A stretch of 63,625 nucleotides of DNA, the filler included, from Octopus bimaculoides (taxonomy: Eukaryota), in the NCBI RefSeq assembly GCF_001194135.2. It is 6 parts of 6 records of this genome, joined end to end, with 100 filler letters (N's around TTAATTAATTAA, not from the genome) between each part and the next. Parts side by side here need not be neighbours in the genome. Positions count along the whole stretch, not along the records: positions 15,245 to 26,930 come from NC_068991.1; 5 more parts are not named here. The stretch is one strand, 5' to 3'. A program made the position numbers and the translations under genes. A model generated the notes under the pieces. The model did no database searches, had not been told where the DNA came from, and was given only the letters and a program-made list of their open reading frames with translations. Positions 15,245 through 18,082 of the stretch are shown in pieces (within the stretch, counting starts at the first letter, position 1; every line of letters begins with the position of its first letter).

Positions 15245-15713
15245 ACCCAAAATTTGAAAGAATTTCGAACAGAAACAAAGTACAACTTCTGTGTTTGGCG
15301 TTTATAGATTTAATTATTTCACTCCACACAATTATGGTAATATAATACATTGAAAGAATAATATACGAAATTGAAGGAGAGAAATGAAAAAACGACCAAC
15401 CTTCAAGACGTCAGATTTCGGACGTTCTGTTGGCGTCTTAACATTCTCCTTCGTCTTTGAATCCTGATGAGAAAGAAAATGCCATTTTGTGTTCAGGTGG
15501 ATCAAATATAACTGAAGTTCCAGATACAAGTGAAACAATACGTACAATCGCTAAAGAACATGAACTAAATTGTATAGTTATTCTTTCACAAATAGTCGAC
15601 TAACACTGGTAGCAGACTGCGGCTGATATAGCATTGGATATTCTCTAAGAAATATCACGACTTAGCTCACTTTAGTACTCTAATTTACTGCAGATATACT
15701 CTTTCGAAAAACG
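15245..15713. repeat. Direct duplication, copy 1 of a ~470-bp block
   Basis: Aligns along its length with 16731-17247 (about 85-90% by eye). Confidence 0.9.
15401..15463 (-). CDS. Candidate 63-nt phase-0 exon (DSKTKENVKTPTERPKSDVLK)
   Basis: Acceptor ttttctttctcatcag|GAT, donor AAG|gttggt, 21 open codons. Homologous to the exons at 16887-16949 and 18017-18082. Confidence 0.55.
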
Positions 15714-15829
15714 TATTTACTCGCATATCTTGTGTTATTAGGACACCATTCGTTTGTCCCGTGCACTAACGATTCTGTAATCTCGCCACCGTCCTCTTTA
15801 GAATAATGGCTTCAATTTGTGACACGATT

Positions 15830-16020
15830 AGAGCAATTTCGGAAAAGTGGTTAAGTCTATTACACAGATCCCAGTGCACAACTGGTGCTTAATTTATCCA
15901 GTTCCAAAGAATGAAAAGCAACTTCGTCCTCAGCTAAATAGAAACTCGGAGCATAAACGGAAGAAATAGCGCTCAATGTTTTTTTGCGCGGAGTGCTAAC
16001 GATTCTGGCAGCTCACTGCC
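15830..16020 (-). mobile_element. SINE, family B (degenerate)
   Basis: Reverse complement similarity to 35745-35960. Confidence 0.6.
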
Positions 16021-16730
16021 TTATATTTCCTGACTATTCCTAAATCTACATAATTGGTTGAATTAGCTCCCTGTCAATATCTCACTGCCATTCCAAACAA
16101 GTTTATAATGCATTTAACTTTAAATCAGAAATCATGTTTTATGTATTATTTCTGTAATCATTCTTTCATTNNNNNNNNNNNNNNNNNNNNNNNNNNNNNN
16201 NNNNNNNNNNNNNNNNNNNNNNNNNNNNNNNNNNNNNNNNNNNNNNNNNNNNNNNNNNNNNNNNNNNNNNNNNNNNNNNNNNNNNNNNNNNNNNNNNNNN
16301 NNNNNNNNNNNNNNNNNNNNNNNNNNNNNNNNNNNNNNNNNNNNNNNNNNNNNNNNNNNNNNNNNNNNNNNNNNNNNNNNNNNNNNNNNNNNNNNNNNNN
16401 NNNNNNNNNNNNNNNNNNNNNNNNNNNNNNNNNNNNNNNNNNNNNNNNNNNNNNNNNNNNNNNNNNNNNNNNNNNNNNNNNNNNNNNNNNNNNNNNNNNN
16501 NNNNNNNNNNNNNNNNNNNNNNNNNNNNNNNNNNNNNNNNNNNNNNNNNNNNNNNNNNNNNNNNNNNNNNNNNNNNNNNNNNNNNNNNNNNNNNNNNNNN
16601 NNNNNNNNNNNNNNNNNNNNNNNNNNNNNNNATATACCTACATACACACACACACACACACACATACACACACACACACACACATATATATATATATATA
16701 TATATGAGAAGTGTGGAATTCATTTATTTG

Positions 16731-17247
16731 ACCCAGAATTTGAAAGAACTTCAAACAGAAACAACATACAACTTCTGTGTTCGGCGTTTGTAGATTTTGT
16801 TAGTTCACTCCACACAATTATCGCAATATAATACATTGAAAGAATAATATAGGAAATTGAAGGAGAGAAATGAAAAAACGACCAACCTTCGAGGCGTCAG
16901 ATTTAGGACGTTCCGTTTGCGTCTTAACATTCTTCATAGTCTTTGAATCCTGATGAGAAAGAAAATACCATTCTATTTTCAAGTGAATCATACATAACTG
17001 AAGTTACTGTTACAAGTGAAACAATACGTACAATCGCTAAAGAACATGAACTAAATTGTATAGTTATTCTTTCACAAATAGTCGAATAACACTGGTAGCA
17101 CGCTGCNNNNNNNNNNCTTTCACAAATAGTCGAATAACACTGGTAGCACGCTGCCGCTGATGTAGCATTGGATATTCTCTAAGAAATAACACGACTTAGC
17201 TCACTTTAGTACTGTAATTTACTGCAGATATACTCTTTCGAAAAACG
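16731..17247. repeat. Direct duplication, copy 2 of the ~470-bp block
   Basis: Aligns with 15245-15713. Contains a small overlap artefact around the N-run at 17107-17116. Confidence 0.9.
16887..16949 (-). CDS. Candidate 63-nt phase-0 exon (DSKTMKNVKTQTERPKSDASK)
   Basis: Acceptor ttttctttctcatcag|GAT, donor AAG|gttggt, open frame. Confidence 0.55.
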
Positions 17248-17384
17248 CTTTCCGATAATGCATTCTCTGTCTCTCCTATATATATTTTTTTGAAATTCGA
17301 GCAATTAATGCAGTAGATCTATTTTCTGCTTTTACAATTCATATCTGCATTTGCAAAAATCTGTCCATGTTTTCCTTAACTTAC

Positions 17385-17444
17385 ATGCCGATTGATCAAC
17401 ACCATATTATCAAAGTTCTGCTCGTTGAAGCGTTCTAAGAGGTA
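17385..17444 (-). CDS. Candidate 60-nt phase-0 exon (YLLERFNEQNFDNMVLINRH)
   Basis: Acceptor ttcttcacaacttcag|TAC, consensus donor CAT|gtaagt, 20 open codons. No homology recognised. Confidence 0.35.
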
Positions 17445-17633
17445 CTGAAGTTGTGAAGAACTCAATTGTCAGTTAAACACCTTTGAAATCTGATGATTAC
17501 TCTATGTATGAAAGCCCTAATTTAAATTTATGAGTATAACAAGATACTTTTTTAATGTTAAATTATCATAACAGAACACATGAAAACCAGACCATGCTTT
17601 AACTTCATTCAACTGATATATATATATATATAG

Positions 17634-17750
17634 GGAGAGAGAGAGAGAGAGAGAGAGAGAGAGAGAGAGAGAGAGAGAGAGAGAGAGAGAGAGAGAGAGA
17701 AATAGATAGATAGATAGATAGATAGATAGATAGATAGATAGATAGATAGA
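17634..17750. repeat. Compound (AG)n / (ATAG)n microsatellite
   Basis: Seen directly. Confidence 0.95.
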
Positions 17751-18016
17751 CCCCCATATACATTGAAACAAAAAGCCAAACAGATGTGAGTGAAAGAGCC
17801 AGTTACTTGGAAGAATTTTTTTAGCTTTACTCGACTATATTTGTTCTACAGTGTCATTTTCCTCGCATGAAATGGTTACCAGCATTTTATTAATATGAGA
17901 GAGAATAGGAGTATCAAATAACGTATATATTTCTGTATAATTTATATTCACTAAATTTATGATCCATTAAAAGAATAATATACGATATTAAAGAAGTGAA
18001 ATTAAAAGCAACTTAC

Positions 18017-18082
18017 ATTCAAATGATCAAATTTAGTATGTTCTATTGGTTTCTTAATCTTCTGCATAGTCTCTGAATCCAG
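18017..18082 (-). CDS. Candidate 66-nt phase-0 exon (LDSETMQKIKKPIEHTKFDHLN), diverged member of the repeat-exon series
   Basis: Acceptor catttctcag|CTG GAT TCA and consensus donor AAT|gtaagt. Aligns codon for codon with the two 63-nt exons. Confidence 0.55.

Follow-up and report, generated by a model that had tools for sequence, protein, structure and literature searches.

Within a 63,625-nucleotide (nt) stretch of joined Octopus bimaculoides sequence (assembly GCF_001194135.2; the window), we analysed the piece at positions 15245-26930, which comes from NC_068991.1. A series of short open segments in this piece are very probably genuine coding exons, predicted on the minus strand, of an Octopus-restricted orthologue of the O. 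sinensis gene LOC118765250. As far as our searches show, the gene is restricted to Octopus and unannotated in this genome; in O. sinensis it is predicted as an uncharacterised protein. The N-terminal half of that protein would be an array of short, charged repeats of ~21 residues, one to each symmetrical phase-0 exon, and the exons are presumably transcribed and translated.

Three of these segments had been picked out in a first-pass annotation made from the raw sequence, and their translations and AG/GT borders matched ours exactly. We label the copies A, B and C; D is a fourth repeat unit and E a fifth, and all exon units discussed lie on the minus strand. Exons 2 and 3 are additions to the three segments.

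15401-15463, minus strand: repeat exon (copy A), 63 nt, phase 0, reading DSKTKENVKTPTERPKSDVLK; by position the counterpart of O. sinensis exon 5
16887-16949, minus strand: extra repeat exon (copy B), 63 nt, phase 0, reading DSKTMKNVKTQTERPKSDASK
18017-18082, minus strand: exon 4 (copy C), 66 nt, reading LDSETMQKIKKPIEHTKFDHLN
21354-21404, minus strand: exon 3, not a repeat unit, 51 nt, phase 0, reading TLQIGRSLLLYSLFPQL
22087-22182, minus strand: exon 2 (unit D), 96 nt, phase 0, reading LPILLPLQVVKNLPTDFDILKKLSQQTLKIPE, with donor GAA/gtaagt

To place these segments we ran phmmer with the joined D, C, B and A peptides against 1.84 billion representative proteins. The sole match was XP_036362891.1, "uncharacterized protein LOC118765250" of O. 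sinensis (P0001; E 4e-27, in five stretches). Related proteins in 1.84 and 5.8 billion sequences numbered only two, both from Octopus, which fits the first-pass suggestion of a lineage-specific gene; its description of the gene as unrecognised holds for this genome, whereas O. sinensis RefSeq already predicts the uncharacterised protein. An exact look-up of the 71-residue open frame around exon A found no record of it, and the literature yielded nothing on this locus.

The P0001 sequence reads, in order, ...AFKNSPADYGLLKKLSQQKSKIPE, then ALQIGRSLLLYSLLQNL, DPKNMENVKMLTVHTKSDHLN and NKNIMEDVKKVTERPKSDVLK, followed by six more such units and a non-repeat tail of ~150 residues. P0001 maps to 17 exons on its genomic locus (L001), over a gene that spans 57 kb. 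The first 14 exons are all in phase 0 with AG/GT borders, and measure 90, 96, 51, 63, 63, 54, 63, 63, 63, 66, 63, 78, 72 and 27 nt. We compared the window with L001 and with the corresponding O. vulgaris locus (L002), which carries a partial model annotated as 'Hypothetical predicted protein' (P0002); each locus was taken as 77-79 kb, including 10-kb flanks on both sides of the gene. Searching the piece by tblastn with P0001 residues 27-62 and 62-79 returned exon 2 (61% identity; orthologous to L001 10705-10800) and exon 3 (72%; orthologous to L001 11477-11527). Exon 2 also contains a stronger internal acceptor, cctctacag/G at 22158, use of which would leave 72 nt, a unit paralogous with exon 13 of O. 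sinensis.

Four blocks of the window (26929-25922, 22980-19992, 19993-17247 and 16168-15245) align in that order to L001 8228-23764, at 87-92% identity with gaps excluded and ~92-93% outside exons. A mariner remnant and an element resembling a miniature inverted-repeat transposable element (MITE) are common to both, at matching places. Together, the colinear alignment and these shared insertions indicate that the window locus is the orthologue of LOC118765250. Model exons 2, 3, 4 and 5 are open in the window in the same order and with matching splice borders, the acceptor of exon 4 being shifted by 3 nt in frame. The two annotated Octopus proteins and the window agree in locus, order, exon borders, repeat consensus and the places of the mariner remnant and MITE-like element, and differ in that the window has an additional exon B, an exon 4 that is 3 nt longer and a broken copy of the start exon. 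They also differ in sequence: exons 2-4 share only 48-76% amino-acid identity with O. sinensis, against the ~93% of the neighbouring DNA.

A census of repeat units counted 12 in L001 and 12 in L002. In both loci every unit lies inside the gene and on its strand, 11 of the 12 are used by the model, and the 10-kb flanks to the two sides of the gene have none. In L001, the unit exons measure 54-78 nt, all of them multiples of 3. The repeat is short and charged, ~21 residues long, with the consensus D-S-K-x-M-E-[DN]-V-K-x-x-T-E-R-P-K-S-D-V-L-K.

Splice borders were ranked with a rough position matrix, which serves for ranking sites only. A and B have like borders (acceptor ttttctttctcatcag/G, donor AAG/gttggt), with acceptors within the top 0.3% of the AG sites of the piece and donors in the top 2-4%. 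Copy C is bounded by tttctcag/C and AAT/gtaagt, and the borders of exon 3 (acceptor ttactttttgcag/A, donor CTG/gtaagt) have the top combined splice scores of the whole piece. At looser to moderate cut-offs, four unrelated open and frame-compatible AG/GT candidates also occur in the 11.7 kb, so AG/GT borders and an open frame alone are not beyond chance, and the bare observation is suggestive, not decisive.

Joined, the five exons of the window encode an open product of 113 residues (339 nt) with no stop or frameshift and with 10 of 10 splice sites intact; the remaining exons of the model fall past the edge of the piece at 15245. Counts of silent and replacement changes were made by the Nei-Gojobori method between the window and O. 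sinensis, for the one-to-one orthologous exons 2-4 (210 nt). These exons have 29 differences in 210 nt and neither insertions or deletions (indels) nor stops, and introns have 303 in 4128 nt (7.3%); the exons thus evolve faster, at about twice the rate (p = 0.0008). The differences comprise 1.0 silent and 28.0 replacement changes, a proportion of 0.021 at silent sites (pS) and 0.171 at replacement sites (pN). When the same number of changes was placed at random under the intron mutation spectrum, a mean of 8.3 were silent, and one or fewer were silent in 0.045% of runs. The other two frames of the same exons give nine and eight silent changes, as chance predicts. Of the three frames, therefore, only the predicted one departs from neutrality, and the way in which it does so, by an excess of replacement changes, points to diversifying selection. 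The first-pass annotation had argued from frame-preserving conservation, an argument that is weak in that form: a non-neutral frame is borne out, whereas the amino-acid divergence of the copies lies at or above the neutral rate, which is diversification in place of conservation.

A comparison of O. sinensis with O. vulgaris shows no difference in 16 of the 17 exons (0 of 1207 nt), against 44 differences in the 9537 nt of their 300-nt flanks (probability of zero exonic differences 0.004); this exon identity indicates recent constraint, as judged from the two genomes. Units measure 54, 63, 66, 72 or 78 nt, each divisible by 3, whereas only 13 of 55 intron indels between species (24%) are. For the intron flanks, considered as splicing elements, the pooled rate was not significantly below neutral (donor side 5.9% versus 7.3%, p = 0.09). 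Conservation is local downstream of donors, with 196 of 200 nt alike between species past exon 2 (21864-22086) and 59 of 60 nt alike between units A and B (15341-15400 and 16827-16886); such donor-side stretches could be splicing signals for these tiny exons.

These comparisons bear on whether the model is a gene-prediction artefact, in which a non-coding tandem duplication with chance splice-like signals and open frames was chained together by the gene finder in O. sinensis. The four unrelated candidates above are what such an explanation would expect, as is the disagreement of two annotation pipelines over the 5' half of the gene. We nevertheless judge it very unlikely, given that the replacement excess is confined to the predicted frame, that O. 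sinensis and O. vulgaris have identical exons despite differing flanks, that every change in unit length is in frame against 24% of intron indels, and that the splice sites of all five exons have been kept despite ~7% neutral divergence. Both pipelines, moreover, have the 3' exons in their models.

Comparing the piece with itself, we found the repeated genomic entity to be the exon together with both intron flanks. The units and flanks recognised beyond the exons are the following:

15245-15758, minus strand: unit A with intron flanks, ~295 nt upstream and 156 nt downstream of the exon, cut by the edge of the piece at 15245
16707-17247, minus strand: unit B with intron flanks, a duplicate of unit A, containing a 10-N gap at 17107-17116
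17763-18016, minus strand: donor-side intron flank of unit C, homologous to the unit D flank at 21810-22086 over 250 nt at 67%
21810-22086, minus strand: intron flank on the donor side of unit D, whose first 200 nt are 98% identical to O. sinensis
26150-26440, minus strand: unit E, the fifth, degenerate and with frame 0 closed; it lies upstream of the annotated start

The window exons of these units measure 96 (or 72), 66, 63 and 63 nt and lie in series on one strand with canonical AG/GT borders. The extent of unit A to 15758 is defined against O. sinensis, and the block 16168-15791 beyond it matches L001 22533-22907 at 88%. The match of 15245-15713 to 16731-17247 puts the homology of A and B at no less than 469 nt, with 87-98% identity by segment. 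The first-pass annotation had called this a recent duplication of ~470 bp; the duplication is real, but A and B have diverged by ~11%, more than the 7.3% that separates introns between species, and it is not particularly recent. C aligns with A and B without gaps over 63 nt at 71% identity, and shares with them the exon and 60-150 nt of the donor side, the first 60 nt past its donor being still 78-80% alike. On the acceptor side, D and A are alike at 65%. Unit E retains the conserved flank motif ctttcacaaa..gttgact.aca, and the O. vulgaris model draws its first exon from the place equivalent to it. Spacing between the window units has been stretched by microsatellites, the mariner remnant and other insertions. 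Unit homology therefore reaches from the exon into its intron flanks, as tandem exon duplication entails. The proposal of tandem exon duplication made in the first-pass annotation is supported by this evidence: the units include their flanks, lie on one strand inside one gene, and are joined by the sister-species model in the same order and with the same borders.

That annotation had also named a high-copy interspersed repeat as the finding that would overturn it, and a transposable-element fragment that landed here several times could in principle give such a series. The region is rich in mobile-element debris (the mariner remnant, a DDE_3 remnant and the MITE-like pair), and the neighbouring sequence at 17390-17621 is indeed an interspersed repeat that recurs in both orientations in L001 (17694-17922, 21969-22201 and 33426-33570). 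The repeat units, on the other hand, keep one orientation and a conserved order inside one gene in both L001 and L002 and are absent from the 10-kb flanks; no terminal repeats or poly-A tails bound them, and their peptide is carried by one protein among 1.84 billion. We regard this explanation as hardly credible. The 17390-17621 repeat also holds a candidate exon that we rejected, a splice-flanked run of 20 open codons at 17392-17451 on the minus strand (YLLERFNEQNFDNMVLINRH), which is absent from P0001 and probably repeat-derived.

Two assembly gaps fall within the array. The 10-N gap at 17107-17116 is intronic, 120 nt upstream of exon B, and has an exact 38-base duplicate on either side (17069-17106 and 17117-17154). 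This 38-mer occurs once in unit A, and its copies in O. sinensis and O. vulgaris are never less than ~1.2 kb apart; the gap is therefore an unmerged contig overlap, not biology, and the DNA is continuous. The second gap is also intronic and separates exons B and A:

16171-16631, no strand: assembly gap, beginning 255 nt past the donor of exon B and ending 707 nt before the acceptor of exon A

The frames of exons A and B are independent of this gap because each exon has its own splice sites. The first-pass annotation had recommended looking here for more units. O. sinensis homology reaches the gap edge (16168 corresponds to L001 22533), and the unit census places none just upstream in that species, which makes a further repeat unit hidden in the gap unlikely.

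At the acceptor of exon 4, O. sinensis reads ctcaacag/GAT and the window ctcag/CTG GAT: of two substitutions, one removes the old AG and the other makes a new AG 3 nt upstream, which keeps the frame and gains one Leu codon. With the O. sinensis orthologue as reference, the shift is derived in the window lineage. The third copy had been described in the same terms beforehand, with a gtaagt donor, the original AG lost and a new AG exactly 3 nt upstream, and the comparison with O. sinensis now supplies the polarity; the claim that its codon register was kept agrees with the gap-free alignment to A and B.

Unit number also varies between species, exon B being additional in the window, with no one-to-one counterpart at the matching position in the O. 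sinensis or O. vulgaris loci. O. sinensis exon 5 and its surroundings (L001 23416-23641) are 100% identical to exon 8 (L001 35663-35888), whereas O. vulgaris exon 5 (L002 24684-24910) is only 93% alike and encodes DSNIMEDVKKVTKSHKSSVSK, with 7 of 21 residues differing from O. sinensis exon 5. The identity of O. sinensis exons 5 and 8 points to either recent gene conversion or assembly collapse. A truncated, dead unit at L001 27477-27623 (L002 27608-27754) is left unused by the gene model, with its donor GT changed to AT and its acceptor flank replaced, and adjoins an inverted copy of the region upstream of exon 4. On these comparisons, the repeat array appears to be still undergoing remodelling: unit B has been added in the window, and O. 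sinensis has both a copied exon and a dead unit.

As for the 5' end, the O. sinensis model has its annotated start codon and first exon inside the mariner remnant, where they are read in another frame than the transposase. This remnant (window 22340-22900, minus strand; L001 ~9900-10500) is internally deleted, so that the DNA-binding part of the transposase runs directly into its C-terminal end; 22344-22610 matches the C-terminus of Mos1 (E 9e-7) and 22660-22830 the DNA-binding domain of SETMAR (E 0.006). The corresponding feature of the window is:

22776-22865, minus strand: segment corresponding to the first coding exon as annotated in O. sinensis, within the mariner remnant and in a different frame from the transposase

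Several observations weigh against the segments being exons of a functional coding gene. The window counterpart of the start exon (22865-22776) is broken by indels of 1 nt and 10 nt and an in-frame TGA, and exons 2 and 3 have no in-frame ATG; given both, the gene may be truncated here, the alternative being a start elsewhere. The selection tests draw on just 210 nt and 29 differences, and the comparison of A with B is uninformative by itself, with five replacement and three silent changes and an exon no better kept than its flanks. P0001 is an automatic prediction. P0002 starts at a different place and joins the 5' part differently, with exon 3 in another frame and exons 4-10 skipped, so the annotation pipelines disagree on the repeat region. 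The dead O. sinensis unit, finally, still has an open frame (DSKTMENVKMSKERPKSDLLN), and openness alone therefore proves little.

Some of these points would suit a gene whose exons are spliced but which is decaying or non-coding in this lineage, as a non-coding RNA or a young pseudogene, its frames left over from a coding ancestor. The broken start exon and the missing ATG in exons 2 and 3 would follow from decay, as would amino-acid divergence of the copies at or above the neutral rate, and no protein of this genome turned up in the protein searches. Decay nonetheless predicts at most the neutral rate, with ~23-29% of changes silent, whereas we observed about twice that rate and one silent change in 29, in the predicted frame only. 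It must also account for 339 nt over five exons without stop or frameshift, for all ten splice sites being intact, and for the replacement in frame of the lost exon 4 acceptor. The start exon of O. sinensis, lying in a mariner remnant, may itself be a wrong or lineage-specific 5' end. We therefore consider decay unlikely and favour coding exons.

The C-terminal 60 residues of P0001, encoded outside the piece, give a weak lead towards a galectin-like domain. They match the Pfam galectin profile PF00337 at positions 73-132, the second half of the domain (E 0.017), but their 15 bits do not reach the gathering threshold of 22.1. The best match in PDB is galectin-4 (E 0.5), and by eye we did not see the canonical sugar-binding residues in P0001. 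An AlphaFold2 model of P0002, built from an alignment of two sequences, has a mean predicted local distance difference test score of 30.4 and is uninformative on the fold. We set aside a Pfam 'LED repeat' assignment of P0001, the top match (E 3e-4), which scores 21 bits where the cut-off is 59.

The titin PEVK exons and the 54-bp exons of fibrillar collagens are known cases in which tandem duplication of symmetrical phase 0-0 exons has built up a protein. The octopus gene resembles them in having one short repeat per exon, in phase 0 and in multiples of 3 nt, and in the duplication of units with their intron flanks, such that the frame is unaffected when a unit is added, lost or skipped. It differs in having no sequence relationship to either and in an array restricted to Octopus; its repeat is rich in Lys, Thr, Ser, Asp and Glu with two invariant Lys, and shows a replacement excess instead of conservation. 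What appears notable beyond the known exon-duplication proteins is this frame-specific replacement excess, which rests on few sites. Chimera-type galectin-3, with N-terminal short tandem repeats and a C-terminal lectin domain, would have a similar layout if the weak C-terminal match of P0001 is real. The octopus protein differs in that its match lies below the Pfam threshold and its C-terminal exons fall outside the piece. The repeats of galectin-3 are Pro/Gly/Tyr-rich 9-mers within a single exon.

The piece as a whole has a G+C content of ~34% and abounds in microsatellites and mobile-element debris, which is usual in intron-rich eukaryotic DNA. The MITE-like element consists of a 119-nt inverted repeat pair (20500-20617 and 21191-21309, 83% identity) spanning ~810 bp; O. 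sinensis and O. vulgaris carry it too, at the orthologous position, and its end lies 45 nt from exon 3. Some 2.9 kb at 22980-25922 have no collinear O. sinensis counterpart, the flanking blocks there being ~570 bp apart; this part holds (AG)n, other microsatellites and a DDE_3-type transposase remnant at 24332-24535 on the minus strand (E 2.4e-4, below the cut-off), and 23117-23779 within it weakly resembles another part of the gene (L001 48646-49318). Dense (AC)n, (GA)n, (GATA)n and (TA)n microsatellites occupy 16632-16706, 17635-17750, 18157-18390, 19200-19565, 23340-23820 and 26880-26930. Matches to Rfam microRNAs in the piece are sub-threshold, fall without exception on microsatellites and were discarded as artefacts.

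We propose that the array arose by tandem duplication of units of ~0.4-1.5 kb, each an exon with its two intron flanks, and that unequal recombination was presumably the mechanism. The frame would survive gain, loss or skipping of a unit because each is a multiple of 3 nt and in phase 0, and skipping of individual exons may occur. As to role, our guess is a fast-evolving surface or secreted binding protein. A more specific reading, which is possible but doubtful, is that the array forms a hypervariable, positively selected binding surface of an octopus-specific, perhaps lectin-like protein, an arms-race molecule of immune, reproductive or salivary function. Its diversity would then come from replacement substitutions, from exon units that are gained, lost or converted between species, and from combinatorial skipping of phase-0 exons.

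Real unannotated micro-exons can thus be spotted by a reader of raw sequence, and the follow-up adds two missed exons and corrects the extent of the gene in this genome. It also flags the annotated 5' end of the O. sinensis model, which sits in a mariner remnant and is not conserved. For cephalopods, the locus offers a compact case of a protein domain that appears to have been built and remodelled by exon duplication in a lineage-restricted gene. Signs of a coding frame that changes faster than neutral DNA suggest that host-pathogen, reproductive or prey-related conflict may involve this gene, and, should the hypervariable binding surface prove true, it would be an arms-race molecule of a kind not yet described in cephalopods.

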